A program made the translations under genes and the position numbers. Source: Macrostomum lignano (Eukaryota). Taken from it: a stretch of 64,000 nucleotides of DNA. Under the pieces are notes generated by a model that did not search any database, was not told the origin of the DNA, and was given only the letters and a program-made list of their open reading frames with translations. This document shows positions 25,867 to 49,298 of the stretch, in pieces (the first letter of the stretch is position 1; each line of letters starts with the position of its first letter). The stretch covers positions 62,001 to 126,000 of the forward strand of contig NIVC01000637.1 of assembly GCA_002269645.1 (NCBI GenBank), read 5' to 3'.

Positions 25867-28800
25867 ATGGCAGCTGAAACCTCATCTGGCTTCGCTCGTC
25901 CAAGGCAGGTAAGGCTGAAATTCCAGTTCTTTTATATTGAAAGCCGATCGAGTAGCTTGAAATCCTTTGAGAGCACTGCCTGAGGGTCTGAGCTCACCCA
26001 TGCACACTGTGACTGAGGGCCTCAGCTCACCCATGCACACTGTGACTGAGGGTCTCAGCTCACCCATGCACACTGTGACTGAGGGTCTCAGCTCACCCAT
26101 GCACACTGTGACTGAGGGTCTCAGCTCATCCATGCACACTGTGACTGAGGGCCTCAGCTCACCCATGCACACTGTGACTGAGGGTCTCTGTTGTGGCTTT
26201 TTGCACTATTAAAATGAACTTAGAATCAGCGCTGACTGCGAATATTTGTTCATGTTTAATCCTACGTAGACAGTACAGCTACGGAGGTTTTGAGCCCATG
26301 GCTCGAATGAATTATTTTATATAAAAAAAATATGAGAAAGAAGCCAAGAGCTGTAGGAGCTAAATAAACGCTCAACAACATTTAACAAACAATAAAGACC
26401 GCATCCTCCATCGATTATAACAAAATGGCGACGAGCTCAAGAGAATTCATCGAACCACTAAAGCGCGGTGACGACCCAATCGATGGCTTCTGCAGTCTGA
26501 GGCAGTCGCATCCTGGCAACAAATTCCGTAGGAGGGCGGCAGACTGAAAAGTGCACTGTTGGCAATGGTGGGGATTGAAGCGTTCAACATGGTAGCCGAC
26601 GCAATAGTTCCCCTGAAGCCAGCTGACAAGTCACTAAGCGAGCTGAAGGAGATCATCCTGGGACAGTTTCAGCCCAAGAAACTCCCGATTGCAGCCCGAT
26701 TCGATTTTTCAAATCTGCGCCAAGGCGATGACGACATTCCGACGTACGTGCGGAAGCTTCGAGCGGCAGCTGAGAACTGCGACTTCAGTTTAGAAACGCC
26801 GAAGCAAGATGGCCAAACAAGGGTCCTTCAGAGCTGGAAAGCCGACTTCGTGACCAATTTGTATTTGGGATTGCTAACCAAGAGGCACCGAGGAAGATGC
26901 TTACAGAAAAGTTATCCGACCTTTCGCTTCAAAAAGCAGTCGAAATCGCGACAGCTCACGAGGCAGTTATGAGGTCACAGAAGAACTGGCAACCCGAACA
27001 AGGCTCAATTTACAAGTTGGCTGCACGGGACAGGCGCATGTCCGGAAGCAAGATCGAGAATGGGCAGCAGGATTCGCGGAATGCTGGAAAAGGTCAGAGC
27101 TTTTGCAGATGCTGTGGAAAGAAAGGTCATCAGAAGCAAGACTGCAGATTTCGAAATGAAGCCTGCAGAGTTTGTCACAAGTCAGGTCATCTAGAGGCGG
27201 GTTGCCGTTACAAAAGGCGAGCAAATCAGGTTAGACTGATCGACGACAGCAGTAAAGCTCCTCGAGACTCCGAGCATAGTGGCTCCGATCGATATATATA
27301 TTTGCTGCTAGATTTCCGGACAGAAGAACGTTCATTGTCAGTCTGAATATCAACGGCAGTCATCTGTCCATGAACTTCGATACGTGGGCTTGAAGGTTTC
27401 CAGAGTTATCAAGACGATGTTATCGTGCACACGGCATCACGAGCTGACCATGATGCAGCAGTTCAATCAGTAAAGTCAAGGCTTCATCAGAACGGACTGC
27501 AGCTCAATGAAAGCAAATGCTCTTACTGCAAAGAAGAAGTAAATATCCTCGGACTCATTGTTAGTGCCCACGGAATTTGACCTGATCCACAGAAGGTTCG
27601 AGCGATAAAAGGATTCCAAAGACCAAAAAATCCGAATGAGCTAAGAAGCTTTTTGGGAATGCTCAAGTTCTATGGACGTTTCATTAAGGACCTCTCAGAC
27701 ATCAGAGCCCCACTGAGCCGACTTCTGCAATCGGATATCGCATAGTCTTGGGGCCAAGAGCAGGACGAAGCCTTCCAGAAGCTGAAAGAAGCATTGACGG
27801 GAGATTCCGTCCTGTTGCCGTTCAACCCGAAAGAAGAGGTCACGCTGACGACTGATGCATCTCCTCACGGAATTGGAGCGGTGATCAAGCAAAACGGTAG
27901 GCCTGTTCTGTACGTGTCGAAGACTCTCACAAAGGCACTCTCATGGAGGGCACTCTCGGTAGACCTGCCCGCGCGGAAGGCGTGCTGGTTCTGCGAGAGT
28001 GGGAAGCGCTTCAGCTCGGCCGAAAGTAGGCGCCAAAGCACCAGTCTCTCGAGGAGCTTGAGGCAGAAAGAAGTGAGGCTGATAGGCCTGAAGGCCTTCA
28101 CCGATTGCTAGTCACTCTTTCCAGGCTTGGGGATAAAGACCACCCGGGCCTCTCTCCACGCAACTGGTACATAGCCCAGCTCCACACAAGCTCGAAGGAG
28201 ACGACAGAGCAGGTCCAGGAAGCGGTGGTTTTTCACCGCCTCGTGCAAGAACGCTGGGTAGATGCCATCAGGCCCAGGCGCCTTGAACGGGTTAAAGGAC
28301 CTTGCCGCTCTAATAATGCGGTCTTTGGTGATCATATACTTTGCTAGGCCTTGTCCTCCCACTGTGTGGTCAGGCGGGCCCTGCTGAGTCGGAGATTTAG
28401 GGAAGAAACTGTTGAGCATTAGCTCTAGAGTCTCTTCTGAGCTCTCTGTGACCGAGTAATCAGGTCTCTTCACAACAGAGTTTAGAAAAACGGTCATTAG
28501 TGAGTGCCTTAACCACGCGGGCTACGGGGCGAGAGCCCTCAAGCCCTTCGCTATATTGGCGCCACTTGGCCGTCTTGGCCCTTCTGACTTGGCCCTTAAA
28601 CTCGTGGATCGCACGGGTATAGGCCTCTCTATCAGATGGGTCTTTGGTTTTGAGCGCTCGTCTTTGGAGGGCCTGGCTCGGCGCCGAAGGGCCCCGAGCC
28701 CTGGGTTCCACCAAGGAGCAGATTTCTTGCCTTTGTAGGCCTTAAGAGGGCAGGCTGCTTCAAAGGCAGTGGTGATCGCCCCGCCCAGGGAGGAGGCGAG

Positions 28801-31800
28801 ATCATCCACCACCTAGCAGTCAGAGAGGTCACTGGGGGGGGGTCAAGATCCCGAAGGCCGCGGCTCAGCTTCGAGCCAAAGGCGGCCCAATCGGTGTTCC
28901 TGACGTTCCGACTCCAAGTGACCTTAGGCTTTTGCTTGTTCGGCCCAATGCAAAAGCGTATAAAGCGGTGGTCCGAGAGCGAGTCCTCGTCCCACACTCG
29001 CCAGCCCGTGACTGCGGAAAGCAGCCCGGGTGAGGCGATGGTGGTGTCGATGACTTCGGCCCACCGCCCATTATTGAACGTTGGTGCATTGCCCACGTCA
29101 CAGAAATTGAGGTTTGTGCTGCTGACGTAGGCCAGCAGCTCATCGCCTCTGTTATTGGTGTTCTTGCTGCCCCAATGCAGGTGGTGTGCGTTCACATCCC
29201 CTGCAATGAGCAGCTCGAACCGACGGGACGCGGCGTAGTCAATTAGGTTGACTAGTGCGTCGCAGCCTACTGGGGCATCACCTGGGAAATAGGCAGATGC
29301 TACCAGCACAGGTTTATTTGGAATGAGGTTATTGATTTGAACAACACAGATGTCCCCAGTCGAGAGATCAGGTCTCATCCATGCCTCAAAAGCTTTTGCA
29401 GCAAAGACCAGAGATCTTGCGCAAGGCTGAGAGTCTGCCATGCAAAAACAGTGGTAGCCAGATGGCACATTATTTGGCTTACCTTTAGTCATCCAGGGCT
29501 CCTGCACGAAGACCAGGCCCGGAAGCTGTTGCTCTGTCGTGCGCATCAGGTTGACTGACGCCGCCACGCAGTGCTGGGTGTTGATCTGCAGACACCAGGT
29601 AGCCGCTGGCATCAGTGCAGATCGGGTGTTGCAGTCGCCAGGAGTTCCTCCTCCTCCTCGGCTCAGGCAACAGCTTCGGGTCGGGGTCGCCGGTGTCCAT
29701 GGGCTCCTCTTCAGCAAAAGGCCCCCGATTTGTCGGAAGGCAATAGGCAGCGTTCGCCGCCCTTCGCCCACCGGCCACGGGGTCCTCCGCTTCAGACTGG
29801 CCCAATGCCCTGGAGCAGCCAGCCGCCTGGGCAGGCGGGTCCGTCTCCAGTCGGCCCTGCCCCGAGGGGTTGGGCCCAGCTGGGACGTCCCCACCCTCCC
29901 TGGACGAGCTGGTGCGCCTAGGCGTCCCGGCGACCTCTCGCCTCAGCTGGGTGATTTTAGCGGTGCGGACCGCCTCAGCTGCGCGCTGGTACAGGCCGCG
30001 CCGCTTGGTGCTGCGCGCCGGGCGTCGGTCTCCTCCGCACTCAGCAGCGCGTTCGGCTTTACCCGCGCGGCCGTGCTGCCGGGCAGGGCGGTTTGCTTTG
30101 GCAGCCTAAGCAGAAGCTCGCGCCTCGGCCCCGGCTGCCTCGGCATTCCGCCCGCCCTGCTCACTGCCACGGGGAGGGTCGGCCTCGTAGGAGCGGATGC
30201 GCAGCTTCCAAAGGCCGACGTTGATGAAGCTGCCGTGTGGATAGCGCCTCATCCAGGCGTCCGACACCCCCAGGATGGCTGTGAAGCCAGTGCCGTCGGT
30301 GCGCTTAAGGGTGTCATGCACCATAGGCCCGCGGCGGGAAGCTCTCGTTTGACTGCTAGCAGACCTTTCCCGACCCGAGTCAGCATCACTGGGCCAAATG
30401 AGAAGGCACGAATCCCTCGTCGCATTCGAATGAATGTTCAGAGGCGTGCCCTTCAGAGTTTGTTTCCACAGGAGGCAATCAACGGCACCTCTCACCTGCT
30501 TCAGCTGGTCGGGAGACAGGCGCGCGTCCTTCCCCAGAATGACAACCGCCGGTTGCCTCTTTGCCGCATCAGCGTAGGAGGCCCGGGGGTCGGTGGAGCC
30601 TTCTTTAGGTGGGCTGTCCACCCTCCCGGCTGCATCGGCCTCCCTATCCTGGCCAGGGACTTCAGTGGGCTCGAGGCCCTCTTCCGCCACCGCCCCAGAT
30701 TGGGAAGCTTCGGCTGCCGCGGGCCGTTGACCCCTGGCGCCGGTTAGGCTTCCGCCCTCCTTGGCCCACCTCGCCTTGTTAAGTCGACGGCGGGCAGCTC
30801 CAGAGGTGGTGCTCAGCTGCTTGGCAGCTGGAGTAGCAGGTGTCTTCTCGGAGGCACCGCTCAGAGTTGGCTCCACGGGTCTCGCCGAGGCGTCCCCGAT
30901 GGTAGCAGGTGGTATGGCCGCGGGGTCTACGGCCCCAGCCGAGGCCGGAGGCACTGTGTCATCTACAGCCGGTTTTTTACTTCGGTTAGAAGCCATTGGC
31001 TGGAAGTAAAAAGGTGGGACTTCCTGCAAAACACAGGCAAAGAGCCGCAAGGACGCAACCCCAAGCCAAGCGGCAGGCCCCCAAAAAGCAGAATACCCCC
31101 CTGCGGGGGGACCCAGAAACGCAAGGGGAACCGTTAGCGACCAGACTACTCCCTGGCCAAGCGTCCATCAGCACGGAGTTACACTGGGACTTTAGAGGGT
31201 GCGTTTAAATGGTCACACCAAGACCCGGCGCCAACGAATAAGCTCGGCAAGGCCCAAGAGCCTGCCTTAACACCCACGGGACGAGTACCCTTCGAAGTGC
31301 GCCTTGCAAGGTGAAAATCAGGAGACAGAGTCTCTTGAGCTATCAGCCCGCCAGGGGAGGCGGAGGGGAGGAGGGGAGAGAGAAGCCAAGATCTTAGCGA
31401 TTTAGTATATTGTGATAAACGCTCAACAACATTTAACAAACAATAAAGACCGCATCCTCCATCAATTATAACAGTCTCAGCTTACCCATGCACACTGACT
31501 GAGGGTCTCAGCTCACCCATGCACACTGACTGAGGGTCTCAGCTCACCCATGCACACTGACTGAGGGTCTCAGCTCACCCATGCACACTGACTGAGGGTC
31601 TCAGCTAACCCATGCACACTGACTGAGGGTCTCAGCTCACCCATGCACACTGTGACTGAGGGTCTCAGCTCACCCATGCACACTGTGACTGAGTGCCTCA
31701 GCTCACCCATGTACACTGACTGAGGGTCTCAGCTCACCCATGCACACTGTGACTGAGGGTCTCAGCTCACCCATGCACACTGTGACTGAGTGCCTCAGCT

Positions 31801-34715
31801 CACCCATGTACACTGACTGATGGTCTCAGCTCACCCATGCACACTGTGACTGAGGGTCTCAGCTCACCCATGCACACTGTGACTGAGGGTCTCAGCTCAC
31901 CCATGCACACTGTGACTGAGTGCCTAAGCTCACCCATGTACACTGTGACTGAGGGTCTCAGCTCACCCATGCACACTGACTGAGGGCCTCAGCTCACCCA
32001 TGTACACTGACTGAGGGTCTCAGCTCACCCATGCACACTGTGACTGAGTGCCTCAGCTCTCCCATAGCAACTCTACATATTGCTGACATTTCAGGTTGCC
32101 CAAACGGGAGCCGAGCTGGTGAAGGCGCTGGCCGCGGTCAGCTACTGTCTGCTGCTGCCGCTGCTGCTGCTTCTGCCAGTTTTTGAGGCTGATGCGGCGC
32201 AGCACTGCGGCTCGAGACTGACCTTCTTGCCCAGAAATCCGGCCGCCTCCTGCTCTGATGACCGGCTGCGCGACGCATTGAGCAGCTGCGCCATGAGATG
32301 CGCTTTGGAAGCTCGCTGCCTCGGCGTTCGCCTCGCTGATAACGGCGGAAGCAGCGGCGTCTGCGCCCTGCTGAGCAGCGAGCAGGAGGTCAACGCGAGT
32401 GCGACTGCCGCCAGCGCGACTGACTGCACGGGCGACCGGGTGTTGGCATGGAAGCTTGGCAAGTTGCAGTCAGGGGCTTCAGTTCCATTTGGCTGGCAGC
32501 AAGTTGCAGTCAGGGGCTTCAGTTCCATTTGGCTGGCAAGTTGCAGTCAGGGGCTTCAGTTCCATTTGACTCTCAGCAAGTTGCAGTCAGGGGCTTCAGT
32601 TCCATTTGGCTGGCAAGTTGCAGTCAGGGGCTTCAGTTCCATTTGACTCTCAGCAAGTGGCAGTCAGGGGCTTCAGTTCCATTTGGCTGGCAGCAAGTTG
32701 CAGTCAGGGGCTTCAGTTCCATCTGGCTGGCAAGTTGCAGTCAGGGGCTTCAGTTCCATCTGGCTGGCAAGTTGCAGTCAGGGGCTTCAGTTGCATTTGG
32801 CTGGCAAGTTGCAGTCAGGGGCTTCAGTTCCATATGGCTGACAGCAAGTGGCAGTCAGGGGCTTCAGTTCCATTTGGCTGACAGCAAGTGGCAGTCAGGG
32901 GCTTCAGTTCCATTTGGCTGGCAAGTTGCAGTCAGGGGCTTCAGTTCCATTTGGCTGACAGCAAGTGGCAGTCAGGGGCTTCAGTTCCATTTGGCTGGCA
33001 AGTTGCAGTCAGGGGCTTCAGTTCCATTTGGCTGACAGCAAGTGGCAGTCAGGGGCTTCAGTTCCATCTGGCTGGCAAGTTGCAGTCAGGGGCTTCAGTT
33101 CCATTTGGCTGGCAGCAAGTTGCAGTCAGGGGCTTCAGTTCCATTTGGCTGGCAAGTTGCAGTCAGGGGCTTCAGTTCCATTTGGCTGGCAGCAAGTGGC
33201 AGTCAGGGGCTTCAGTTCCATTTGGCTGGCAGCAAGTTGCAGTCAGGGGCTTCAGTTCCATCTGGCTGGCAAGTGGCAGTCAGGGGCTTCAGTTCCATTT
33301 GGCTGGCAAGTTGCAGTCAGGGGCTTCAGTTCCATTTGGCTGGCAGCAAGTTGCAGTCAGGGGCTTCAGTTCCATCTGGCTGGCAAGTGGCAGTCAGGGG
33401 CTTCAGTTCCATTTGGCTGGCAGCAAGTTGCAGTCAGGGGCTTCAGTTCCATTTGGCTGGCAGCAAGTTGCAGTCAGGGGCTTCAGTTCCATCTGGCTGG
33501 CAAGTGGCAGTCAGGGGCTTCAGTTCCATTTGGCTGGCAGCAAGTTGCAGTCAGGGGCTTCAGTTCCATTTGGCTGGCAAGTTGCAGTCAGGGGCTTCAG
33601 TTCCATTTGGCTGGCAGCAAGTTGCAGTCAGGGGCTTCAGTTCCATTTGGCTGGCAAGTTGCAGTCAGGGGCTTCAGTTCCATTTGGCTGGCAAGTTGCA
33701 GTCAGGGGCTTCAGTTCCATTTGGCTGGCAGCAAGTGGCAGTCAGGGGCTTCAGTTCCATTTGGCTGACAGCAAGTGGCAGTCAGGGGCTTCAGTTGCAT
33801 TTGGCTGACAGCAAGTGGCAGTCAGGGGCTTCAGTTCCATTTGGCTGACAGCAAGTGGCAGTCAGGGGCGTCAGTTCCATTTGGCTGGCAGCAAGTTGCA
33901 GTCAGGGGCTTCAGTTCCATTTGGCTGGCAGCAAGTGGCAGTCAGGGGCTTCAGTTCCATTTGGCTGGCAGCAAGTTGCAGTCAGCTGATCCAGTCATTT
34001 TGCATAGAGGCTGAGATGCCAGCTAGCAGGAAGGCAAGCCGGCATGCATTTATGCTGAGCCCCGAGCACTTCTTAAGCCACCAGTGCGAATGTAACCCTA
34101 AATTTCAATGTGTGCGCAGTTGATGAAGAATGTATTTTTTAATGAAATTGCTAAACACTCGTTACCTACCGACTAGAAAGCAACTTTTTGGTGGCTTGTT
34201 GTGGCAATGCTCAGTTCTCTTAAAATCAAGATTAGAGTGAAGCAGTTTACTCAAGGCAAACAAGGGTGTAGAGAGCAAGCTTTGAGCATAAACATTTTTT
34301 TGAATAAAACATTCCAGAGCAGCTGCAGCTGTCAGGATGTAGCGAGTCAAGCACCTATGATGGAAACTGCAACAATGCCATTGACGGAAACTTGGACCAA
34401 AACCACAACTCTGGAGCCGTCTGCACCCATACCCAGGCAACAGTGGGCAACGAGTGGTGGCAGGCCTCCATGGCCTCCAGGGCCTTCGTCAGTCTGGTGC
34501 GCATCTACAACCGGCAGGACGGCAACGAGGGCAGACTGAATAACTTCGCGATCTCCGTGGACGGCCTGCAGTGCGCCAGCTACAACTCCACGCAGGCATT
34601 CAGCATCAAGGACTTTCCTTGCGAGCAGGTTGGCACGACTCTCAAGATCACGCAGCGCTTCAGTAATGAGTTCCTCACCCTGTGCGAGGTCATCGCCTTC
34701 GGACGTCTGCTGTAA
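25867..34715 (+). CDS. PAN/Apple-like + F-type lectin protein, copy A (about 267 aa)
   Basis: Exons 25867-25908, 32095-32458 (GC donor), 34318-34715. Hydrophobic LLLPLLLLLP..ADA leader and Cys-rich CAMRCALEARCLG..CALL domain. F-lectin motifs AIDGN, CTHT, EWWQ, VRIYNRQDGNEGRL, LTLCEV. Confidence 0.8.
25975..26188. repeat. 33-bp lectin intron-1 minisatellite (copy A, left of LTR)
   Basis: CACTGTGACTGAGGGTCTCAGCTCACCCATGCA. Confidence 0.95.
26189..31473 (+). mobile_element. Gypsy (Mag-type) LTR retrotransposon, internally deleted, inside intron 1 of lectin copy A
   Basis: 5' LTR 26189-26422 (TGTT..AACA). PBS TGGCGACGAG at 26426 is complementary to the tRNA-Ser(GCU) 3' end. Gag has two CCHC knuckles, followed by a protease stub FDT fused to RT YQDD and RNase H TDASPHGIGAV. 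The 3' LTR remnant spans about 31378-31473. 5-bp TSD GTCTC (26184-26188, 31474-31478). Confidence 0.93.
27947..31375 (-). mobile_element. Non-LTR retrotransposon (LOA/R1-like, I group), 3'-truncated and frameshifted, nested in the Gypsy element
   Basis: ORF1 at about 31000-29900. APE endonuclease: LQINTQH, VQEPW, IAGDVNAHH..WGS..TNNRG, IDTT, SDHRFI. RT start: FKAPGPDGIYPA, VVFIPKPGK, FRPISLTSFCLKLLERL, QHAFRAGRSTESALH. Clade assignment is by eye. Confidence 0.9.
31474..32065. repeat. 31/33-bp lectin intron-1 minisatellite (copy A, right of LTR)
   Basis: Same unit plus a 2-bp shorter variant. Confidence 0.95.
32459..33985. repeat. 37/40-bp donor-derived minisatellite (copy A intron 2)
   Basis: GCAAGTTGCAGTCAGGGGCTTCAGTTCCATTTGGCTG(GCA). 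Confidence 0.95.
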
Positions 34716-34784
34716 GCGTTTCTTAGCAGAGTCGATGGCCGATGCTGATTTGTGAAGTGAAGGCTGACAGCTAGCTGGAAGCTG

Positions 34785-35122
34785 TAGCCTTGAGCACACC
34801 TATGCTAAACATGATCAACTGTAGCCATGAGCACACCTATGCTAAACATGATCAACTGTATCCATGAGCACACCTATGCTAAACATGATCAACTGTAGCC
34901 ATGAGCACACCTATGCTAAACATGATCAACTGTAGCAATGAGCACACCTATGCTAAACATGATCAACTGTATCCATGAGCACACCTATGCTAAACATGAT
35001 CAACTGTAGCCATGAGCACACCTATGCTAAACATGATCAACTGTAGCCATGAGCACACCTATGCTAAACATGATCAACTGTAGCCATGAGCACACCTATG
35101 CTAAACATGATCAACTGTAGCC
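34785..35122. repeat. 37-bp minisatellite 3' of copy A
   Basis: TGATCAACTGTAGCCATGAGCACACCTATGCTAAACA. Confidence 0.95.
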
Positions 35123-35421
35123 AGTACATCTATTATATGTTAAACATACACCTATACCATCTGGAGCTTTTCTCTCGATTTTTCTTCACTACATAATCTT
35201 GCCTGGAGTTACTGTCTGTCACTTAATTTATACACAAAATATATTTTATCATTGCTTCAAAAATAACTCTTATCCGATAGATTTGACAGCATCAGCCCCA
35301 TAACTCGTTGACAGGTTTGCGAACTTGCATCAAATATAAAAAGCAAGCCAGCTGTGCAGCACCTGCAACTTTTTTTGTTTCTCCATCAACCAGTCCAGTT
35401 TCCCACAGTGCAATGATGAGC

Positions 35422-36238
35422 CTACCCTCAGCCTGGCCTCAGCCTGCCCTCAGCCTGCCCTCAGCCTGCCCTTAGCCTGCCCTCAGCCTGTCCTCAGCCT
35501 GCCCTCAGCTTGCCCTCAGCCTGCCCTCAGCCTGTCCTCAGCCTGCCCTCAGCTTGCCCTCAGCTTGCCCTCAGCCTGTCCTCAGCCTGCCCTCAGCTTG
35601 CCCTCAGCCTGTCCTCAGCCTGCCCTCAGCTTGCCCTCAGCCTGCCCTCAGCCTGCTCTCAGCCTGCCCTCAGCCTGTCCTCAGCCTGCCCTCAGCTTGC
35701 CCTCAGCCTGCCCTCAGCCTGCCTCAGCCTGCCCTCAGCCTGTCCTCAGCCTGTCCTCAGCCTGCCCTCAGCTTGCCCTCAGCTTGCCCTCAGCCTGTCC
35801 TCAGCCTGCCCTCAGCCTGCCCTCAGCTTTCCCTCAGCTTGCCCTCAGCCTGTCCTCAGCTTACCCTCAGCCTGCCCTCAGCCTGCCCTCAGCCTGTCCT
35901 CAGCCTGCCCTCAGCTTGCCCTCAGCCTGCCCTCAGCCTGCCTCAGCCTGCCCTCAGCCTGTCCTCAGCCTGTCCTCAGCCTGCCCTCAGCTTGCCCTCA
36001 GCTTGCCCTCAGCCTGTCCTCAGCCTGCCCTCAGCCTGCCCTCAGCTTTCCCTCAGCTTGCCCTCAGCCTGCCCTCAGCCTGTCCTCAGCCTGTCCTCAG
36101 CCTGCCCTCAGCCTGTCCTCAGCCTGTCCTCAGCCTGCCCTCAGCCTGCCCTCAGCCTGTCCTCAGCCTGTCCTCAGCCTGCCCTCAGCCTGCCCTCAGC
36201 CTGCCCTCAGCCTGCCCTCAGCCTACCCTCTGCCTGCC
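35422..36238. repeat. 11-bp repeat
   Basis: CCTCAGCCTGY. Confidence 0.95.
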
Positions 36239-36817
36239 CTTCCAAATGAAAGTATCCAATCTGTTTTCAAATAATACGACTGCTAATAAACTGTTGTCTG
36301 AAATAAAGCATATTTAGACCAAACAAGCCAAAAATCTCAATTTCTGTAAAATCCCTCTTGTCATTTTATTATTTTATTATTATTAATTTATTATTTTATC
36401 ATTTTTTTATTGCGATTAAAAACTCAACAGCCTGAGAATATTTAGAAATTGAACAACGACTTAATAAATTACACCGATGCTCCAAACCAACCGCTTTTCT
36501 GCCACGTCTTGACGCAGAAGCCTTCAGTCCTCGGTAGTGTGCTCATATATAGCTGGAATGTCTGGGCTGAGCATACCAACCTTTTCTGAGCGGAATACAG
36601 ATAAATTCATTCCAACTTCAAAGTATAGCCAAGCTGAATCTGCAAGGTATTTCTAGTAGACAGGAAGAGCAGCAATTGCTTTTAAAAATTATATTGACCG
36701 CAGAAGGATTGTTGAGAATTAATACTTATAAAATTTAGTGATGGGAGATGTGTCATATTTTAACGATTTTTTGCCACGCAAGTTGTGTATATGAGCAACC
36801 ACTAGTACATTTTATTA

Positions 36818-37773: not shown

Positions 37774-40700
37774 ATGGCAGGTGAAAATCTCTCTATTTTT
37801 AGTCGGAAAACGCAGGTGAGTCTGAGATTTTCAATTCGGGTCTAATGCTACAATTTTCTTAGCTAGAATAATTATGCTAATCGGTTCGAACACTGTAACT
37901 GAGGGTCTCAGCTCACCCATGCACACTGTGACTGAGGGTCTCAGCTCACCCATTCACACTGTGACTGAGTGCCTCAGCTCACCCATGCACACTGTGACTG
38001 AGTGCCTCAGCTCACCCATTCACACTGTGACTGAGTGCCTCAGCTCACCCATGCACACACTGTGACTGAGGGTCTCAGCTCACCCATGCACACTGTGACT
38101 GAGGGTCTCAGCTCACCCATGCACACTGTGACTGAGTGCCTCAGCTCACCCATAGCAACTCTACATTTTGCTGATATTTCAGGTTGCCCAAACGGGAGCC
38201 GAGCTGGCGAAGGCGCTGGCCTCGGTCAGCTACTGTCTGCTGCTGCCGCTGCTGCTGCTTCTGCCAGTTTTTGAGGCTGATGCGGCGCAGCACTGCGGCT
38301 CGAGACTGACCTTCTTGCCCAGAAATCCGGCCGCCTCCTGCTCTGATGACCGGCTGCGCGACGCACTGAGCAGCTGCGCCATGAGATGCGCTTTGGAGGC
38401 TCGCTGCCGCGGTGTTCGCCTCGCTGATAACGGCGGAAGCGGCGGCGTCTGCGCCCTGCTGAGCAGCGAGCTGGAGGTCAACGCGAGTGCGACTGCCGCC
38501 AGCGCGACCGACTGCACGGGCGACCGGGTGTTGGCATGGAAGCCTGGTAAGTTGCAGTGCGGGGCTTCAGTTCCATTTGGCTGGCAAGTTGCAGTGCGGG
38601 GCTTCAGTTCCATTTGGCTGGCAAGTTGCAGTGCGGGGCTTCAGTTCCATTTGGCTGGCAAGTTGCAGTGCGGGGCTTCAGTTCCATTTGGCTGGCAAGT
38701 TGCAGTGCGGGGCTTCAGTTCCATTTGGCTGGCAAGTTGCAGTGCGGGGCTTCAGTTCCATTTGGCTGGCAAGTTGCAGTGCGGGGCTTCAGTTCCATTT
38801 GGCTGGCAAGTTGCAGTGCGGGGCTTCAGTTCCATTTGGCTGGCAAGTTGCAGTCAGGGGCTTCAGTTCCATTTGGCTGGCAAGTTGCAGTCAGGGGCTT
38901 CAGTTCCATTTGGCTGGCAGCAAGTTGCAGTCAGGGGCTTCAGTTCCATTAGGCTGGCAACAAGTTGCAGTCAGGGAAGCTTCAGTTCCATTCGGCTGGC
39001 AGGTTGCATTCAGGGGCTTCAGTTCCATTTGGCTGGCAAGTGGCAGTCAGGGGCTTCAGTTCCATTTGGCTGGCAGCAAGTTGCAGTCAGGGGCTTCAGT
39101 TCCATTTGGCTGGCAGCAAGTTGCAGTCAGGGGCTTCATTTCCATTTGGCTGGCAGCAAGTTGCAGTCAGGGGCTTCAGTTCCATTTGGCTGGCAGCAAG
39201 TTGCAGTCAGGGGCTTCAGTTCCATTTGGCTGGCAGCAAGTTGCAGTCAGGGGCTTCAGTTCCATTTGGCTGGCAAGTTGCAGTCAGGGGCTTCAGTTCG
39301 GTTTGGCTGGCAAGTTGCAGTCAGGGGCTTCAGTTCGGTTTGGCTGGCAAGTTGCAGTCAGGGGCTTCAGTTCCATTTGGCTGGCAGCAAGTTGCAGGAA
39401 GCTGATCCAGTTATTTTGCAGAGGCTGAGATGCCAGCTAGCGAGAAGGCAAGCCAGCATGCATTTATGCTGAGCCCCGAGCACTCCTTAAGCCATTAGGC
39501 CGAATGTAAGCCTAAATTACCATGGGTGCGCAATTGATGAAGATATTTATTAATGAAATTGCGATCATAACCTGTTACTTACCGACTAGAGAGAAACTGT
39601 TTGGTGAGTTGTGGCAATGTTCAGTTCTTTAAAAGTCTGAAGAGTTCGCTTTAGCACACTAGAGAGAGAGGGAAAGAGAGAATTAAGTCTAGTGTCTAAA
39701 CTCACGAACTCCCACTTCCAGATGTTAAGCCTGGGAACAGAATTCAGTGATCACTTACTGATGCGGGCTCCTCTTCTTTGTCGGGCAGGTTCTCCGAGCT
39801 CCTTTCTTCGAATATTCTTCCTCCGGAGTATTATCTTGAATTCTATAAATCGGCCGAATGTAAGAGCGTATATCTAAGAGTAAGAGTCAATATATTCCTC
39901 GAGTGCAGAAGTCAATATATTCCTCGAGTGCAGAAGTCAATATATTCCTCGAGTGCAGAAGTCAATATATTCCTCGCGTGCAGAAGTCAATATATTCCTC
40001 GCGTGCAGAAGTCAATATATTCCTCGCGTGCAGAAGTCAATATATTCCTCGCGTGCAGAAGTCAATATATTCCTCGCGTGCAGAAGTCAATATATTCCTC
40101 GCGTGCAGAAGTCAATATATTCCTCGAGTGCAGAAGTCAATATATTCCTCGCGTGCAGAAATCAATATATTCCTCGAGTGCAGAAGTCAATATATTCCTC
40201 GCGTGCAGAAGTCAATATATTCCTCGCGTGCAGAAGTCAATATATTCCTCGCGTGCAGAAATCAATATATTCCTCGCGTGCAGAAATCAATATATTCCTC
40301 GCGTGCAGAAGTCAATATATTCCTCGAGTGCAGAAGTCAATATATTCCTCGCGTGCAGAAGTCAATATATTCCTCGCGTGCAGAAGTCAATATATTCCTC
40401 GCGTGCAGAAGTCAATATATTCCTCGCGTGCAGAAGTCAATATATTCCTCGAGTGCAGAAGTCAATATATTCCTCGCGTGCAGAAGTCAATATATTCCTC
40501 GAGTGCAGAAGTCAATATATTCCTCGCGTGCAGAAATCAATATATTTCTCGCGTGCAGAAGTCAATATATTCCACGAGTGCAGAAGTCAATATATTCCTC
40601 GCGTGCAGAAGTCAATATATTCCTCGCGTGCAGAAATCAATATATTCCTCGAGTGCAGAAATCAATATATTCCTCGCGTGCAGACGTCAATATATTCCTC

Positions 40701-42006
40701 GAGTGCAGAAGTCAATATATTCCTCGAGTGCAGAAGTCAATATATTCCTCGAGTGCAGAAGTCAATATATTCCTCGCGTGCAGAAGTCAATATATTCCTC
40801 GAGTGCAGAAGTCAATATATTCCTCGCGTGCAGAAGTCAATATATTCCTCGAGTGCTGAGATCAGAGATGCGCCCTAATAACAAAGTCAACTCTAAAACA
40901 ATAACGAGGTCCTCCAGAAAGGGTGTCTTCTTCTAGAAATAACGGAATCGGAGTCGTGTGCCCGTATCGATTACTCTAGGGTACCAAAATCAATCAATCA
41001 ATAATCCTCTAAGGGTATCGGAATCGGTCCGCAGATCCTATCCAATCCTTTAGGAAAAGGAAGGCCTCAAACTTAATAGACTTAGTGAACTCAACTGATC
41101 AGTAACGGCCGGCAATAACGCAGCTCTCAATAATCAAATAACGAAGACTCGAACAAAGACTTACCGAATGGTATTTATTTCCCTCGGAGATGTAGCCTCG
41201 CTTAACTGCTTCGGCAAACTCAAGATCTTTGGAGGCTGCTCCGAGTCTGAGATTTTAGCTCGGATTTTGGCTTGTATTTATAGGCAAGTTTTTTACGTAT
41301 TAACATGATTCCTCTTTTTGTTATAAATGGTAAGCCGACTCATCTTTCATCATATGTAGTAACATGATACATCTTCCCATTATAAATAGTAACATGCTTC
41401 ATAGCTTCGTTATAAATAGTAACCTGATTCACAGTTTAAGTTTTGCTGCGCATGTTTGCATTAGTCTACTTACAGTAGCATTTTATGAATAATTATACTC
41501 TACAAGTCAAGATTAGAGTGAAGCAGTTTACTCAAGGCAAACAAGGGTGACGAGAGCAAGCTTTAAGCTATGAGCATAAACATTATTTTAAATAAAACAT
41601 TCCAGAGCAGCTGCAGCTGTCAGGATGTAGCGAGTCAAGCACACTTGAAGGAAACTGCAACAATGCCATTGACGGAAGCGTGGACCAAAACCACAATCCT
41701 GGAGCCGTCTGCACCCATACTGACCGGGCAACAGTGGCCAACGAGTGGTGGCAGGCCTCCATGACCTCCAGGGCCTTCGTCAGTCTGGTGCGCATCTACA
41801 ACCGGCAGGACTGCTGCGAGACAAGACTGAAGAACTTCGCGATCTCAGTGGACGGCCTGCAGTGCGCCAGCTACAACTCCACCCAGGCATTCAGCATCGA
41901 GGACTTTCCTTGCGAGCAGGTTGGCACGACTCTCATGGTCACGCAGCGCTTCAGTAATGAGTTCCTCACCCTGTGCGAGGTCATCGCGTTCGGACGGCTG
42001 CTGTGA
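37774..42006 (+). CDS. PAN/Apple-like + F-type lectin protein, copy B (about 268 aa)
   Basis: Exons 37774-37815, 38183-38546 (GT donor), 41606-42006. Binding loop RQDCCETRL. Confidence 0.85.
37893..38155. repeat. 33-bp lectin intron-1 minisatellite (copy B)
   Basis: Same unit as 25975. Confidence 0.95.
38547..39395. repeat. 37/40-bp donor-derived minisatellite (copy B intron 2)
   Basis: First unit begins GTAAGT; later units begin GCAAGT. Confidence 0.95.
39638..41504 (-). mobile_element. Solo LTR containing a 25-bp minisatellite, in intron 2 of lectin copy B
   Basis: Ends TGAAGAGT..ACTCTACA with 4-bp TSD AGTC (39634-39637, 41505-41508). The empty site is present in copy A (about 34220-34235). 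TATAAA (about 41280) and AATAAA (about 41175) are on the minus strand. Confidence 0.75.
39885..40856. repeat. 25-bp minisatellite inside the solo LTR
   Basis: GTGCAGAAGTCAATATATTCCTCG(C/A). Confidence 0.95.
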
Positions 42007-42099
42007 AGAAAGAAGAAGTGACCGGCCAAGTGTTTCTCAGCAAAGTCGATGGCTGATGCTGATTTGTGAAGTGAAAGCAGACGGTTACTTTGAAGCTGA

Positions 42100-42518
42100 T
42101 CAACTGTAGCCATGAGCACACCTATGCTAAACATGATCAACTGTAGCCATGAGCACACCTATGCTAAACATGATCAACTGTAGCCATGAGCACACCTATG
42201 CTAAACATGATCAACTGAAGCCACGAGCACACCTATGCTAAACATGATCAACTGTAGCCATGAGCACACCTATGCTAAACATGATCAACTGAAGCCTTGA
42301 GCACACCTATGCTAAACATGATCAACTGTAGCCATGAGCACACCTATGCTAAACATGATCAACTGTAGCCATGAGCACACCTATGCTAAACATGATCAAC
42401 TGTAGCAATGAGCACACCTATGCTAAACATGATCAACTGTAGCCATGAGCACACCTATGCTAAACATGATCAACTGTAGCCATGAGCACACCTATGCTAA
42501 ACATGATCAACTGTAGCC
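42100..42518. repeat. 37-bp minisatellite 3' of copy B
   Basis: Same unit as 34785. Confidence 0.95.
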
Positions 42519-42814
42519 AGTACACCTATTATATGTTAAACATACACCTATACAATCTGGAGCTTTTCTCTCGATTTTTCTTCACTACATAATGTTGCCT
42601 AGAATTACTGCCTGTCCCTTAATTTACACACAAAACAGATTTTATCATTGTTTCAGACGTAACTCTTATCCGATAGATTTGACAGCATCAGCCCCACAAA
42701 TGATTGACAGGTTTGCGAACTTACATCAAATATGAAAAGCAAGCCAGCTGTGCAGCACCTGCAACTTTTTTGTTTCTCCATCAACCAGCCCAGTTTCCCA
42801 CAGTGCAATGATAA

Positions 42815-43205
42815 GCCTGCCCTCAGCCTGCCCTCAGCCTGCCCTCAGCCTGTCCTCAGCCTGCCTCAGCCTGTCCTCAGCCTGTCCTCAGCCTGCTCTC
42901 AGCCTGCCCTCAGCCTGTCCTCAGCCGGCCCTCAGCCTGCCCTCAGCCCGCCTCAGCCTGTCCTCAGCCTGCCCTCAGCCTGCCCTCAGCCCGCCTCAGC
43001 CTGCCCTCAGCCTGCCCTCAGCCTGTCCTCAGCCGGCCCTCAGCCTGCCCTCAGCCCGCCTCAGCCTGTCATCAGCCTGCCCTCAGCCTGCCCTCAGCCT
43101 GTCCTCAGCCTGCCCTCAGCCCGCCTCAGCCTGCCCTCAGCCTGCCCTCAGCCTGTCCTCAGCCGGCCCTCAGCCTGCCCTCAGCCTGTCCTCAGCCGGC
43201 CCTCA
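42815..43205. repeat. 11-bp repeat
   Basis: Same unit as 35422. Confidence 0.92.
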
Positions 43206-44357: not shown

Positions 44358-46759
44358 ATGGCAGGTGCAAACCTCTCTGTTTCTGGTCGGAAAACGCAGG
44401 TGAGTCGGAGATTTTCGATTCGGGTCTGATGCTACAATTTTCTTGGTTGGACTAATTATGCTTATCGATTGAAACACTGTGACTGAGGGTCTCAGCTCAC
44501 CCATGCACACTGTGACTGAGAGCCTCAGCTCACCCATGCACACTGTGACTGAGGGTCTCAGCTCACCCATGCACACTGTGACTGAGGGTCTCAGCTCACC
44601 CATGCACACTGTGACTGACGGTCTCAGCTCACCCATGCACACTGTGACTGAGTGCCTCAGCTCACCCATGCACACTGTGACTGAGTGCCTCAGCTCACCC
44701 ATGCACACTGTGACTGAGGGTCTCAGCTCCTTCATGCACACTGTGACTGAGGGTCATAGCTCACCAATGCACACTGTGACTGAGGGTCTCAGCTCACCCA
44801 TGCACACTGTGACTGAGTGCCTCAGCTCACCAATGCACACTGTGACTGAGGGTCTCAGCTTACCCATAGCAACTCCACATATTGCTGACATTTCAGGTTG
44901 CCCAAACGCGAGCCGAGCTGGTGAAGGCGCTGGCCGCGGTCAGCTACTGCCTGCTGCTGCCGCTGCTGCTGCTTCTGCCAGTTTTTGAGGCTGATGCGGC
45001 GCAGCACCGCAGCTCAGTATCGACCTTTCTGCCCAGAAATCCGGCCGCCTCCTGCTCCGACGGCAGGTTTTGGGACGCACTGTCCCGCTGTTCCATGAGA
45101 TGCGCTGTGGAGGCTCGCTGCCGCGGAATTCGCCTCGCTGATAACGGCGGAAGCGGCGGCGTCTGCGCCCTGCTGAGCAGCGAGCTGGAGGTCAACGCGA
45201 GTGCGAGTGCCGCCAGCGCGACCGACTGCACGGGCGACCGGGTGTTTGAAATGAAATGGAAGATTGGCAAGTTGCAGTGCGGGGAAGCTTCATTCGATTC
45301 AATGAATTTTACGAAGATAAATTAGGTATGTTATGAGATTATTAGGTCATTAGGTTTTTGTACAGAACAACCGTATGTGGATAGACTGATCCTCTGAGCT
45401 CAAAGTAAACAAATAAACTAACACACAGCCCACACACTCAAACAGGGCTCCACGGACTCTTCTTCTTTAAGTGTTAAAGCACGGATAGCTGAAGCAGAAG
45501 GATGCTAGACTCGATTTTCTTAGAAACGAGATGCGAACTCGTAGAGGCCAGAAAGGAATTTATATTTGTCGCATTGCTGCACCGTTCTACCGGTTTATTT
45601 TGACCATTGTCTGGCACTTGTTTGCATTTTTATGACCGCTGATTATTTATCCAAAGTCACATCAAACAAACAAAAATCAGTAAGAACCCCCTCATTCCCC
45701 ACGACTCCAGAGAATCAATAAGAACACACCACACCTTAGCAATGTTGAATAACAAGCAACAAGATTAGCAATGTTGACAGAGGCAGAATCATTGTGAGTC
45801 TAAGTATAAGTCTCAAGACACGGAAATTGTATATCAGTAAAAAGCTTAATGGTTAACAGCAAGCTGGCAAGGGAACTGCCAGACGAAACACCACGGGGCG
45901 CTTGAAGTTCTGCGAGTCGATTTGTTCAACGGAGGATGTCACAATCTGTAAATATAATTGAAGAGTTCGAATCGATACCCGGGGCCGGCCAGCTCACAGT
46001 GACTGAATAGAAAGAAGTGTCGCGAGTTTTTCGATGCGAATTTGGTCAAAATAGGCGACAAAACGGCGTAGCGCTGCAGAGAACGCATAGCGCTGAATTG
46101 GTTTTTGCCATAGACAAATCCGGTCGAGAAAAATCCGTGTTGCTCGAGAGCATGCTGAAGGCACTGGCGTTGCGACAAACATTCGTTCCTTACCGGCTCT
46201 TCGGCTCATTTCTAAGAAAATCCAGTGTGGGGTCCATATGTTAGAGCTTTCAAAGCTTAAACCCTAAATTATCGCCTGACATTTCTACGCAGGAGCAGGA
46301 CTGTTCTAAATTGAAGTCTTCAGGTAGTTAATACTCGCTCAATCGAACAAAAACATTCCAGAGCAGCTGCAGCTGTCAGGATGTAGCGAGTCAAGCACAC
46401 TTGAAGGCAACTGCAACAACGCCATTGACGGAAGCCTGGACCAAAACCACAACGCCGGGGCCGTCTGCACCCATACCCAGGCAACAGTGGGCAACGAGTG
46501 GTGGCAGGCCTCCATGGCCTCCAGGGCCTTCGTCAGTCTGGTGCGCATCTACAACCGGCAGGACGGCAACGAGGGCAGACTGAATAACTTCGCGATCTCC
46601 GTGGACGGCCTGCAGTGCGCCAGCTACAACTCCACCCAGGCATTCAGCATCAAGGACTTTCCTTGCGAGCAGGTTGGCACGACTCTCAAGGTCACGCAGC
46701 GCTTCAGTAATGAGTTCCTCACCCTGTGCGAAGTCATCGTCTTCGGACGGCTGCTGTGA
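44358..46759 (+). CDS. PAN/Apple-like + F-type lectin protein, copy C (about 269 aa)
   Basis: Exons 44358-44399, 44897-45266 (GC donor), 46362-46759. Loop RQDGNEGRL; first mature Cys replaced by Arg (QHRSS). Confidence 0.8.
44476..44870. repeat. 33-bp lectin intron-1 minisatellite (copy C)
   Basis: Same unit as 25975. Confidence 0.95.
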
Positions 46760-46851: not shown

Positions 46852-47138
46852 GAATACTCTACAATACTCTGAAATACCCTGCAATACCCTTTAATACTCT
46901 GAAACTCTGCAATACTCTGTAATACTCTGCAATACTCTGTAATGCTCTGCAATAACCTTTAATACTCTGTAATACTCTGCAATACTCTGTAATACTCTGC
47001 AATACTCTGTAATACTCTGCAATACTCTGTAATGCTCTGCAATAACCTTTAATACTCTGTAATACTCTGCAATACCCTGTAATACTCTGCAATACCCTGT
47101 AATACTCTGCAATACTCTGAAATACCCTGCAATACTCT
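46852..47138. repeat. 10-bp repeat
   Basis: AATACTCTG(C/T). Confidence 0.92.
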
Positions 47139-47216
47139 ACTGAAGGTAATATGGTTGCGCATTGCATCAAGCCAGTTCACCTCTGGCTACTGCCACAAGG
47201 CTTTGACCTTGACAGC

Positions 47217-47221
<5 letters not shown>

Positions 47222-47257
<36 letters not shown>

Positions 47258-47265
47258 ACTCTCTC
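47222..47265. repeat. (TC)n microsatellite
   Basis: Direct reading. Confidence 0.9.
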
Positions 47266-47320
47266 TGGTTGAGGCGTGAAGTTTTTACAAGCTCTTTTCT
47301 AGAAATTTAGGCCGACAGCA

Positions 47321-47603
47321 GGGGCCGTAGCCCAGTTGTCTAGCACGGCGCTCTTGTGTGCCAGCGGCCCAGGCTTGGGTCTGTTAGTGTGATTAACGCC
47401 CTTGGCACAAGGTTACATGCCTAACGGTGAATTAAGTGAGGGCCGCTGTGCACTCCTGTGTGAGTAGTGTGTGCCTGTGTGTGCATGACTGCGCAGTGCG
47501 CACGCATCCGAGCGCTTGTGTGCCTGCTCAGGGGAGTCAGCGGAATGACAATTTCGCTAAAAGTGCGCCAGGGTGCACACAGCCCCTCTGCCTCTAATAA
47601 AAA
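47321..47603 (+). mobile_element. SINE copy with tRNA-like 5' end and A-rich tail
   Basis: GGGGCCGTAGCCCAGTTG head with a degraded B-box; the body and AATAAAAA tail match 19740-19977. Confidence 0.65.
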
Positions 47604-48078
47604 GTTAGCCAGACAGTTGGAAATGTTTGTTTACAAAGAATTGATTGACGCAAACAGCAGCAATAGCCACTTAATTGATTCTGTCGGTCATGTTTGGCTC
47701 GGTGTATTTTCTCTAATGGCTGCATTGTCTTGAGAGCCTCTGCGGACTAGTGGGAGGCAGCAGCAGCACTCAAGTGGGGCAGGCAAAAACCGAGGCTGGC
47801 GGGTCTCCTATGCCGTGCGATGTCGGTAATTTTGCTAATTTTCCCTGCCAACTGACCTACCAAATCCACGCACTCCGATTGTTATTGATTGGGTCCGGGA
47901 ATAGCGACAAAAAAGTGGGCACCTGCAGAAATAGACAGGTAGCAGAGACGATAGTATAAAATCACCCACAGTGCTTCAGTGAATGCCAAATAATTGGCAG
48001 TTGCGCCCCGCAGCTGCAGTTTCTTTTCATTACAGCAGCCTATTTCTGTATATTCGGCATCTGCTGAGTCGAGTCTGC

Positions 48079-49298
48079 ATGCTGGTAAGCCCGCAGTTTT
48101 CTAGCAGGGACAGCTAAAGCAGAATAGCAGACCTCTCAAATCGTACAAACTTCGCAGCAAAATGCATTGGCAATATAGGAAGTATTTTCAGTTTATTTAG
48201 CACAAATTTTCCTATACCTCCCTTCTGCACTTCAGAATACCAAAATGAAGCAATTTCCAATGTTTGCATGAAATTTCACGGAATTTGCATCATCTGCACC
48301 ATAGTAGACTCGAACTGACGCAGGCTGAACGACTCATCCCTGTACAACTCGTAATTTTAGGCTGCCAAACCGACTTCAACAATGACGGTGTCGATGCCGC
48401 TGATCGCTGTATTCTGCTGCAGCTGTCTGCTGCTTGCAGTCCGCGGCGCTGAGGCTCTGCAGCCGTGCAGCTCGCGACTGATTTTCGAGCCGAGAAACCC
48501 GGCCACCGCCTGCTCGGGCGGCAGATTCAAAACTGCGCTCTCCGCGTGCGCCTGGAGATGCACACTGGAGCCCCTGTGCCGCGGCATCCGCCTTGTTGAC
48601 GACGGCAGCTGCGCCCTGCTAGGCAGCGAGCAGGAAGTCAGCGCGGCTGCATTGGCCGCCTCCGCGACTGACTGCAGCGGCGATCGGCTGTTTGCCTGGC
48701 GGTCAGGTGAGAAAGCTTAGTCTGAAGGAAGCTGACATGCTAAATTATGACAGAATTTTTTTGGCCATGCAGTTACCTGGAAAATAACTTTGAGTCTGAG
48801 GACTAATATTGCAATCCCGTATCCTCGAGGCTCTGAATTTAGGCTTCATATAAATATCCTCCATAAAAACATTCTGCAGAGCAGCTGCAGCTGAGCGGCT
48901 GCAGCCAGTCCAGCACCAGCTACAACGGCATCTGCGAACGCGTCACAGACGGCGGCACGGCACAGACCTACTCGGCCGGGAGCTGCGGTCACACAGACAA
49001 CTTGGCCAACACCAAACAGTGGTGGCAGGCGGCCGCGGCCTCCAAGGCCTTCATTAGCCTGGTGCGCATCTACAACCGGCAGGACTGCTGCGCCAACAGG
49101 CTGACGAACTTCACCATCGCCCTGGACGGCCAGCAGTGCGCCAGCTACAACTCCGGCCAGACATTCAGCGTGAAAGACTTCGCCTGCGATAAAGTCGGCA
49201 GCAACCTCAGGGTGACGCAGCGAACCGAGGGCGAGTACCTCACACTGTGCGAGGTCGTCGCCTTCGGCCGCCAGCTTCCAGCGTCTGGTCAGGAGTAG
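48079..49298 (+). CDS. PAN/Apple-like + F-type lectin protein, divergent copy D (about 256 aa)
   Basis: Exons 48079-48084 (tentative ATG CTG|GTAAGC), 48361-48706, 48880-49298; intron-2 phase is the same as in A-C. Signal peptide MPLIAVFCCSCLLLAVRGAEA; loop RQDCCANRL. Translation could instead start at 48382. Confidence 0.82.

Follow-up and report, generated by a model that had tools for sequence, protein, structure and literature searches.

Four tandem paralogues in Macrostomum lignano probably encode secreted F-type lectins with a PAN/Apple-like cysteine-rich module

Introduction

F-type lectins are well studied as a recognition family, and to our knowledge almost nothing is known of them from flatworms, among which Macrostomum lignano is a transgenic model that is also tractable by RNA interference. 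In oyster bindin, F-lectin repeats of sperm form a gene family with rapid variation of the sugar face among recent copies, and this variation involves repeat number, recombination and strong positive selection. Members of the family are recognized by the motifs H-X24-R-X-D-X4-(R/K) and h2DGx (Vasta et al.; PMC5712786), and it is established that planarians have F-lectin domains, that F-lectins occur in mosaic architectures and that their isoforms form multigene families (PMC5712786). Here we describe a locus of this kind in a 64,000-nt stretch of M. lignano contig NIVC01000637.1 (hereafter the window, to whose positions all coordinates refer), a piece of eukaryotic DNA rich in repeats. At 25867-49298 on the + strand, four neighbouring paralogous genes, g1 to g4, lie one behind the other with every spliced frame open. 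They probably form a tandem array in which each gene encodes a small protein of the secretory pathway, composed of a PAN/Apple-like module and an F-type lectin domain, and the products are most likely secreted lectins that recognize fucose. The cluster is a real and fairly ordinary lineage-specific lectin expansion.

Results

Four paralogous genes with a shared exon layout

The cluster runs from the ATG of g1 exon 1 (25867) to the end of the g4 stop codon (49298), with all family exons on the + strand and spliced proteins of 267 (g1), 268 (g2), 269 (g3) and 247 (g4) amino acids (aa). Two sets of four near-identical + strand peptide stretches mark it, one reading "...LLLPLLLLLPVFEADAAQHCGSRLTF...DCTGDRVLAWK" and the other "EQLQLSGCSESS...NAIDG...CTHT...WWQ...RIYNRQDCCETRL...LTLCEV...". 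Exon 2 encodes a hydrophobic leader and a Cys-rich module, while exon 3 encodes an entire F-type lectin domain. This observation of four genes is beyond chance: E-values against Pfam and PDB reach 1e-18, and between g4 and g1-g3 nonsynonymous differences are rarer than synonymous ones (proportions pN < pS, Fisher p <= 5e-5). The exons are as follows.

25867-25908, + strand: g1 exon 1, ATG and 14 codons (MAAETSSGFARPRQ), phase-0 donor GTAAGG; aligns without indels with exon 1 of g2 and g3 (tblastn)
32095-32458, + strand: g1 exon 2, hydrophobic leader and 7-Cys PAN-like module; GC donor GCAAGT, phase 1
34318-34715, + strand: g1 exon 3, encoding the whole F-type lectin domain; its sugar loop, RQDGNEGR, lacks the vicinal Cys pair
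37774-37815, + strand: g2 exon 1 (MAGENLSIFSRKTQ), donor GTGAGT, phase 0 (tblastn)
38183-38546, + strand: g2 exon 2, leader and 7-Cys module; donor GTAAGT, phase 1
41606-42006, + strand: g2 exon 3, encoding an F-type lectin domain whose loop is the canonical RQDCCETR
44358-44399, + strand: g3 exon 1 (MAGANLSVSGRKTQ), donor GTGAGT, phase 0 (tblastn)
44897-45266, + strand: g3 exon 2, leader and Cys-rich module; first Cys replaced (HCGS to HRSS), altered exon end, GC donor
46362-46759, + strand: g3 exon 3, encoding an F-type lectin domain with RQDGNEGR as its sugar loop
47983-48084, + strand: tentative g4 exon 1, from sequence pattern only; TATAAAA at 47955, ATG at 47983, phase-0 donor GTAAGC after 48084
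48361-48706, + strand: g4 exon 2, opening at the acceptor 48361 and with its ATG at 48382; encodes a short signal peptide (MTVSMPLIAVFCCSCLLLAVRGAEA) and the 7-Cys module; phase-1 donor GTGAGA
48880-49298, + strand: g4 exon 3, F-type lectin domain, loop RQDCCANR

A preliminary description of this DNA had proposed four co-oriented genes of three exons each, with leader and Cys-rich domain in exon 2 and the lectin in exon 3. The layout was borne out, as all spliced open reading frames (ORFs) are intact and the phases are shared, with intron 1 in phase 0 in g1-g3 and the intron between the two domains in phase 1 in all four. Three exons are present in g1-g3, and g4 has its ATG inside exon 2 and lacks a homologous exon 1: nothing homologous to the 14-codon exon turned up ahead of g4, and the candidate 5' exon at 47983-48084 shows no similarity to exon 1 of the other copies, from which g4 has diverged to 59% aa identity. 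A search with the spliced proteins (tblastn) recovered exactly these four copies and no further one in the window. The ORFs at 49754-50398 (+) and 49926-50411 (-), downstream of the cluster, have no Pfam match and were rejected as family members.

The junctions carry acceptor consensus (TTTCAG/G and TTCCAG/A, the slash marking the junction), and exon 2 joins exon 3 without interruption in all four copies. Two M. lignano models in UniRef named "FTP domain-containing protein", A0A1I8GDW5 (99%) and A0A1I8GDC7 (94%), are identical to g2 to these extents over the shared parts, and both have the g2 junction AWKP/EQLQLSGC, which lends independent support to the splice between exons 2 and 3. A reading of g2 exon 2 that continues through the adjoining 37-bp minisatellite (a 434-aa ORF) was rejected because the UniRef models splice at AWKP/EQLQ, with the lectin exon in phase. 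Further copies of the family exist elsewhere in the polyploid M. lignano genome (UniRef), one of them with a third sugar loop, RQDDVESR.

An F-type lectin domain at the C-terminus

At the level of sequence, the identification of the C-terminal domain as an F-type lectin domain of ~130 aa with an intact His/Arg/Arg triad is solid. Pfam F5_F8_type_C_2 matched the spliced proteins of all four genes with 29.3-37.7 bits against a gathering cut-off of 27.8. Among PDB sequences searched with phmmer, the g2 domain matched MsaFBP32 of striped bass (3CQO, E 1.7e-18), the eel agglutinin AAA (1K12, 1.4e-8) and 2J1R (2.9e-8), as well as F-lectin domains of Streptococcus pneumoniae and S. mitis. In these alignments CTH, WW and RxDCCxxR coincide residue for residue, and the triad aligns with His52/Arg79/Arg86 of AAA. 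Fish fucolectins were matched in UniRef at E-values down to 1.6e-14, at an identity of only ~30-35%.

For membership we took a His followed ~24-26 residues on by R-x-D-x4-(R/K). The fucose motif reads H-X27/28-R-x-D-x4-R in all four genes, its H, R, D and R being invariant alignment columns, and the spacing from His to Arg, 27 in g1 and g3 as opposed to 28 in g2 and g4, exceeds 24 owing to a small insertion behind the His. The complete F-lectin domain claimed in the preliminary description thus stood, with the spacing it gave. Its calcium motif stood for three copies, as h2DGx is canonical in g1 (AIDGN), g2 and g3 (AIDGS), and g4 has VTDGG, which departs at the second and last positions. The vicinal Cys pair of the sugar loop, common in F-type lectins though not required, is kept in g2 (RQDCCETR) and g4 (RQDCCANR) and replaced in g1 and g3, which have GNEG in place of the four residues between D and R. 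The loop codons, RQD-xxxx-R, lie at 34524-34541 (g1), 41815-41832 (g2) and 46568-46585 (g3).

A number of observations weigh against four functional two-domain lectin genes. The Cys-Cys pair that g1 and g3 lack contacts fucose in AAA, and g3 lacks one Cys of the module as well. The donor of intron 2 is GC (GCAAGT) instead of GT in g1 and g3, as opposed to GTAAGT in g2; intron 1 of g1 is 6.2 kb long and transposon-laden, its 33-bp minisatellite being interrupted by ~5.3 kb of nested retroelement fragments (26189-31473). Among g1-g3 the pN/pS ratio is 0.5-0.67, not clearly below 1 (p 0.18, 0.07, 0.005), so that decay of some copies is possible. With exon 1 included, the region before the hydrophobic core of the g1-g3 leader (n-region) is ~26 aa, long for a signal peptide, and a type II membrane anchor is possible. 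No canonical poly(A) signal (AATAAA/ATTAAA) was found within 400 nt of any of the four stop codons. The UniRef models are themselves predictions, and in A0A1I8GDW5 a g2-like gene is fused with a second lectin exon into a chimera. An AlphaFold model of the whole g2 protein from its single sequence had a mean predicted local distance difference test score (pLDDT) of 35, too low to be used for the jelly-roll fold.

A Cys-rich module that resembles PAN/Apple domains

The module behind the leader comprises ~88 residues, with seven Cys in g1, g2 and g4 and six in g3. Its framework in g1-g4, ASC...SSC-AMR-C-ALEAR-C...VCALL...TDC, fits C1...C2-x3-C3-x5-C4...C5...C6, and the same six Cys are invariant in three relatives from database searches (P0020-P0022). 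PAN/Apple-like is the best available label for this sequence, below the Pfam cut-offs, and we consider it somewhat better than an even call. The competing explanation, that the module is a lineage-specific cysteine-rich fold whose likeness to PAN/Apple domains is a chance matter of Cys spacing, is a serious one that we nevertheless hold to be rather less probable than not.

Across seven members of the module family, no Pfam family other than PAN_1, PAN_2, PAN_3 and PAN_4 was matched at E <= 1, which speaks against a different fold, as does the relative P0017, which nearly attains the cut-offs (PAN_1 20.8 vs 21.4; PAN_2 20.5 vs 21.1). Even so, every PAN score was sub-threshold: the best of the window proteins had 16.2 bits with PAN_1 against a cut-off of 21.4 (E 0.0095), the module profile consensus had 15.2 bits, the best member had an E-value of 0.001 and the g4 module had no PAN match at all. 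The PAN/Apple assignment of the preliminary description found no match at the curated threshold and is weakly supported, among other things by the Cys spacing and the lack of any other Pfam family.

Profile alignment (hhalign) with apple domain 1 of factor XI and prekallikrein placed the six Cys in register, C-x3-C-x5-C included, at a mere E of 0.029; this comparison of Cys register is a lead and not a test. The same procedure gave no alignment with the PAN pair of plasminogen and HGF, and a MAFFT alignment with four reference PAN/apple sequences was dropped, its Cys being mis-registered. An AlphaFold model of the module from a seven-sequence alignment (pLDDT 60.6, predicted template modelling score 0.52) has a helix at 23-38, which carries C2 and C3, followed by a beta-hairpin at 44-49/55-60. 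Searched against the PDB with Foldseek, this model gave nothing significant (best E 1.7), another point against the PAN label; PAN-type structures do recur among the non-significant matches, namely the plant S-locus receptor kinase SRK (6kyw and 5gyy), SML-2 (2yio) and MANEC (2msx and 5h7v). The module profile had no match among PDB sequences at E <= 10.

Run exhaustively over 1.84 billion representative proteins (HMMER), the module profile returned six matches, of which only P0002, a member of this gene family, and P0017 are credible; that a single credible relative outside the species emerged from so large a set also favours a lineage-specific fold. P0015, P0016 and P0019 are repeat or low-complexity artefacts, and P0018 is a 2400-aa beta-helix/NosD protein without a PAN match. 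A word-indexed search with the enlarged profile added P0020-P0022, the first of which maps to assembly GCA_013332715.1, contig JAAUYG010153348.1, 772-1125. Together with P0017 these are the only module relatives found outside Macrostomum, and they are short, stand-alone or duplicated PAN-like proteins.

The pairing of the F-lectin with the PAN-like module was found in M. lignano only: among 5.8 billion proteins no instance outside the species appeared. PAN is likewise absent from the partner domains of F-lectins listed in the 2017 review (PMC5712786), the sole source consulted on this point, and an earlier description is possible. As regards novelty, the lectin part is already auto-annotated in UniRef.

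Age, exchange and selection in the array

By self-BLAST the duplicated unit of g1-g3 measures ~6-7 kb, and g4 is compact and diverged. Synonymous divergence (dS) is 0.09-0.15 among g1-g3 and ~0.7 to g4, so that, as judged from these substitutions, g1-g3 are young, as the preliminary description had it, and g4 is an older split. The copies form a mosaic, in that g1 and g3 share 96% identity in exon 3, yet in exon 2 g1 is closest to g2 (self-BLAST), which points to gene conversion or unequal exchange. Overall, nonsynonymous relative to synonymous divergence (dN/dS) is 0.4-0.65, and with pN < pS in the comparisons of g4 with g1-g3, these ratios indicate selection that is relaxed-purifying and not broadly diversifying, and purifying in the long term. 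The "diversifying" system of the preliminary description did not hold up as a whole.

There is one local exception. Exon 3 of g2 differs from that of g1 and g3 at 23-26 sites. A stretch of 12 nt within RxD-xxxx-R holds six of them, every one nonsynonymous (Bonferroni p 0.005-0.02). Between D and R stand CCET in g2, GNEG in g1 and g3, CCAN in g4 and DVES in the UniRef paralogue; the CC of g4 shows CC to be the ancestral state of the loop. On these alignments the sugar loop is rewritten among the young copies (CCET, GNEG, DVES). The cluster of changes is the sole sign of diversification, and it is equally compatible with relaxed constraint after loss of the disulfide.

Relaxed constraint is the core of the view that g2 and g4 alone are functional lectin genes, with g1 and g3 being young duplicates on the way to pseudogenes. 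The GC donors at the domain-joining intron, the missing Cys pair in both sugar loops, the lost first module Cys and altered exon 2 end of g3, the 5.3 kb of retroelements inside g1 intron 1 and a pN/pS of 0.5-0.67 that is not significantly below 1 for g1-g2 or g2-g3 all speak for this view. Nevertheless every ORF is intact and the His/Arg/Arg triad is retained, pN is below pS between g1 and g3 themselves (p = 0.005), and the database paralogue with the third loop variant is otherwise conserved in this domain. Following a G, moreover, GCAAGT is the best-consensus form of a GC donor. Loss of the vicinal Cys pair is also known from functional F-lectin domains, for example in one domain of MsaFBP32 (PMC5712786). 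We therefore regard pseudogenization of g1 and g3 as unlikely.

A donor scan of the 37/40-bp minisatellite in intron 2 showed a GGCAAGT donor-like site in each of its units, and the change from GT to GC in g1 and g3 may consequently have come about through conversion by this neighbouring repeat.

Proposed function

Secretion, sugar specificity, PAN fold and biological role are here predicted from sequence. The leader (a hydrophobic stretch followed by an AxA-type site) would direct the protein into the secretory pathway, leaving a product of ~220 aa once removed; N-x-S/T sites are present in the proteins on direct reading of the sequence. The lectin domain would bind terminal glycans of the L-fucose type through its basic triad, while the disulfide-rich module of ~88 aa, with its odd seventh Cys in g1, g2 and g4, could provide a second binding surface or a surface for oligomerization. 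The proteins would then recognize glycans as soluble molecules, for which a mucosal or innate-immune function is the default by analogy with the family (PMC5712786), reproduction and adhesion being the alternatives. As to its history, the array probably grew through unequal crossing-over or gene conversion, in a region rich in minisatellites, with g4 splitting off early (dS ~0.7) and g1-g3 arising recently as mosaics (dS ~0.1).

Instead of an immune or mucosal role, the proteins might serve the adhesive organs or the reproduction of this hermaphrodite, in recognition between sperm and egg or within the seminal fluid. Such a role would fit the rewritten sugar-binding loop of the young copies, a pattern that is typical of reproductive and immune proteins alike, and F-type lectins do include oyster bindin, their roles in fertilization having been reviewed (PMC5712786). 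On the other hand, dN/dS is below 1 overall, and a literature search for Macrostomum F-type lectins or fucolectins, or for a lectin in seminal fluid, gave nothing specific and no link of M. lignano fucolectins to seminal fluid or adhesion. We consider such a role doubtful, and keep soluble glycan recognition at mucosal surfaces or in innate immunity as the default.

The start of translation in g1-g3

The mini-exon upstream of copies 1-3 consists of an ATG, 14 codons free of indels and a phase-0 GT donor, and its flanks do carry indels in the alignment. The codons themselves evolve neutrally (omega ~1). As opposed to g4, whose leader is a classical short signal peptide, g1-g3 acquire their long n-region through this exon.

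Translation of g1-g3 might instead begin at the AUG that forms the 3' end of a trans-spliced leader, once this is joined to the acceptor of exon 2. In M. lignano the spliced leader has ...TTGCATG as its end, ~30% of the genes are trans-spliced, and trans-splice acceptors read [T/C]TNCAG (PMC8629364); the exon 2 acceptors at 32095, 38183 and 44897 are TTTCAG, and the frame of g1-g3 opens at the first base of the exon. As the leader ends in ATG, its AUG would yield MVAQTG... and a signal peptide of normal length, and the neutral evolution of the exon 1 codons would be accounted for. This start is nonetheless rather improbable, given that ATG, indel-free codons and phase-0 donor are all kept in three copies, the diverged g1 copy included, and that an upstream cis donor normally favours cis-splicing (PMC8629364).

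Repeats, transposons and neighbouring sequence

The claim that repeats and transposons split the exons was confirmed, as minisatellites and retroelements fill the introns. Tandem Repeats Finder (TRF) located a 33-bp minisatellite in intron 1 of g1-g3, a 37/40-bp one at the exon 2 donor and a 25-bp one in intron 2 of g2. Two arrays downstream of the stop codon, 93-98% identical between g1 and g2, were duplicated along with the genes and so mark the extent of the duplicated unit. The features are these.

25909-32094, + strand: g1 intron 1, 6.2 kb; 33-bp minisatellite split by nested retroelement fragments
25980-26188 and 31474-32065, + strand: 33-bp minisatellite of g1 intron 1 (TRF, self-BLAST)
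26559-27346, + strand: gag of long terminal repeat type with CCHC knuckles (Pfam Retrotrans_gag, sub-threshold)
27794-28108, + strand: RNase H piece (Pfam RT_RNaseH_2)
28111-29894, - strand: endonuclease/reverse transcriptase of a long interspersed element, interrupting the gag/RNase H element (Pfam Exo_endo_phos_2)
30109-31050, - strand: 314-aa ORF in g1 intron 1, no Pfam match
32459-33985 (g1) and 38544-39386 (g2), + strand: 37/40-bp minisatellite, starting exactly at the exon 2 donor (TRF)
34782-35123 (g1) and 42097-42519 (g2): 37-bp minisatellite downstream of the stop, co-duplicated with the genes
35419-36240 (g1) and 42814-43205 (g2): 11-bp minisatellite downstream of the stop, co-duplicated with the genes
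46853-47138: a different, 10-bp array downstream of g3

The 37/40-bp array is open in all three frames and gives rise to long spurious ORFs. Upstream of the cluster lies a 21/84-bp tandem repeat (24080-24818), where a 335-aa ORF of PQPQPPA type (23993-25000, -) is probably a minisatellite artefact. Further out, an ORF fragment of the mitochondrial carrier family (11762-12322, -; Mito_carr, E 8.5e-48) belongs to an unrelated neighbouring gene, and a 507-aa ATG-started ORF (58946-60466, -) with repeat-driven Pfam matches only (Gp5_C, DUF445) is either a repetitive protein or a repeat artefact.

Discussion

The cluster opens no long-standing question, its lectin part being already auto-annotated. 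It does offer an example of a young gene cluster shaped by minisatellites and gene conversion, with a GT donor probably converted to GC by the adjacent repeat. Were the module a true PAN/Apple domain, a new partner would be added to the mosaic F-lectin architectures, and M. lignano would have a small, defined set of candidate secreted glycan receptors for work on immunity, mucus biology or reproduction. One may go further and picture a rapidly turning-over recognition locus in which minisatellite-driven exon shuffling and wholesale swaps of the loop (CCET, GNEG, DVES) vary the glycan specificity next to a PAN-like partner not described before; such a locus would match, in a flatworm, the diversified repertoires of fucolectins and bindin that serve recognition of self and non-self or of gametes. 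We regard this picture as speculative and quite improbable.

The closest described relatives of the lectin domain are the fish fucolectins (AAA of Anguilla anguilla, 1K12; MsaFBP32, 3CQO), with which it shares CTH...WW...RxDCCxxR, the AIDG calcium motif and Cys aligning with those of AAA. Fish fucolectins are secreted and form families of multiple genes or isoforms, and likewise the flatworm set, which is predicted to be secreted, is multigenic; one domain of MsaFBP32 lacks the Cys-Cys pair, as g1 and g3 do (PMC5712786). In contrast to the single or tandem lectin domains of fish, the flatworm proteins have one lectin domain behind an unrelated 7-Cys module. The spacing from His to Arg is 27-28 as compared to 26 in AAA, and an extra Cys pair at the start of the flatworm domain is not present in fish fucolectins.

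The combination of an F-lectin with another extracellular binding module has its counterparts in the mosaic proteins furrowed/CG9095 of Drosophila, SpCRL of sea urchin, PXN-FBPL of Xenopus and CTLD-FTLD of hydra (PMC5712786). The partners recorded there are CCP, CTLD, pentraxin, FA58C, EGF, H-type lectin and transmembrane segments, and a PAN/Apple-like partner is not listed among them (PMC5712786). Within M. lignano, the lectin domains of A0A1I8JGN9 (P0023, a tandem F-lectin) and A0A1I8HUV8 (P0024, WSC and F-lectin) are 48-52% identical to that of g4 and share the lineage-specific extra Cys pair with the genes of the window (L-S-x-C-S-Q-x-S...G-x-C), whereas their architectures differ from g1-g4. 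In light of these differing architectures, shuffling in this lineage seems to have placed the lectin exon beside several Cys-rich modules of carbohydrate type.

For the module, the PAN/Apple domains of factor XI, prekallikrein, plant S-locus receptor kinase and apicomplexan microneme lectins such as SML-2 offer the best comparison, as its sequence and predicted model appear to share with them a six-Cys pattern, C-x3-C-x5-C and a helix followed by a beta-hairpin. These domains are extracellular protein- or glycan-binding modules, and a part of the same type is proposed, by analogy, for the flatworm module. It differs from them by its seventh Cys, a short region before C1, an Ala/Ser-rich segment before C6 and scores under every Pfam PAN cut-off. 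As opposed to oyster bindin, finally, the flatworm array has a dN/dS of 0.4-0.65, and a single four-residue loop stands out.

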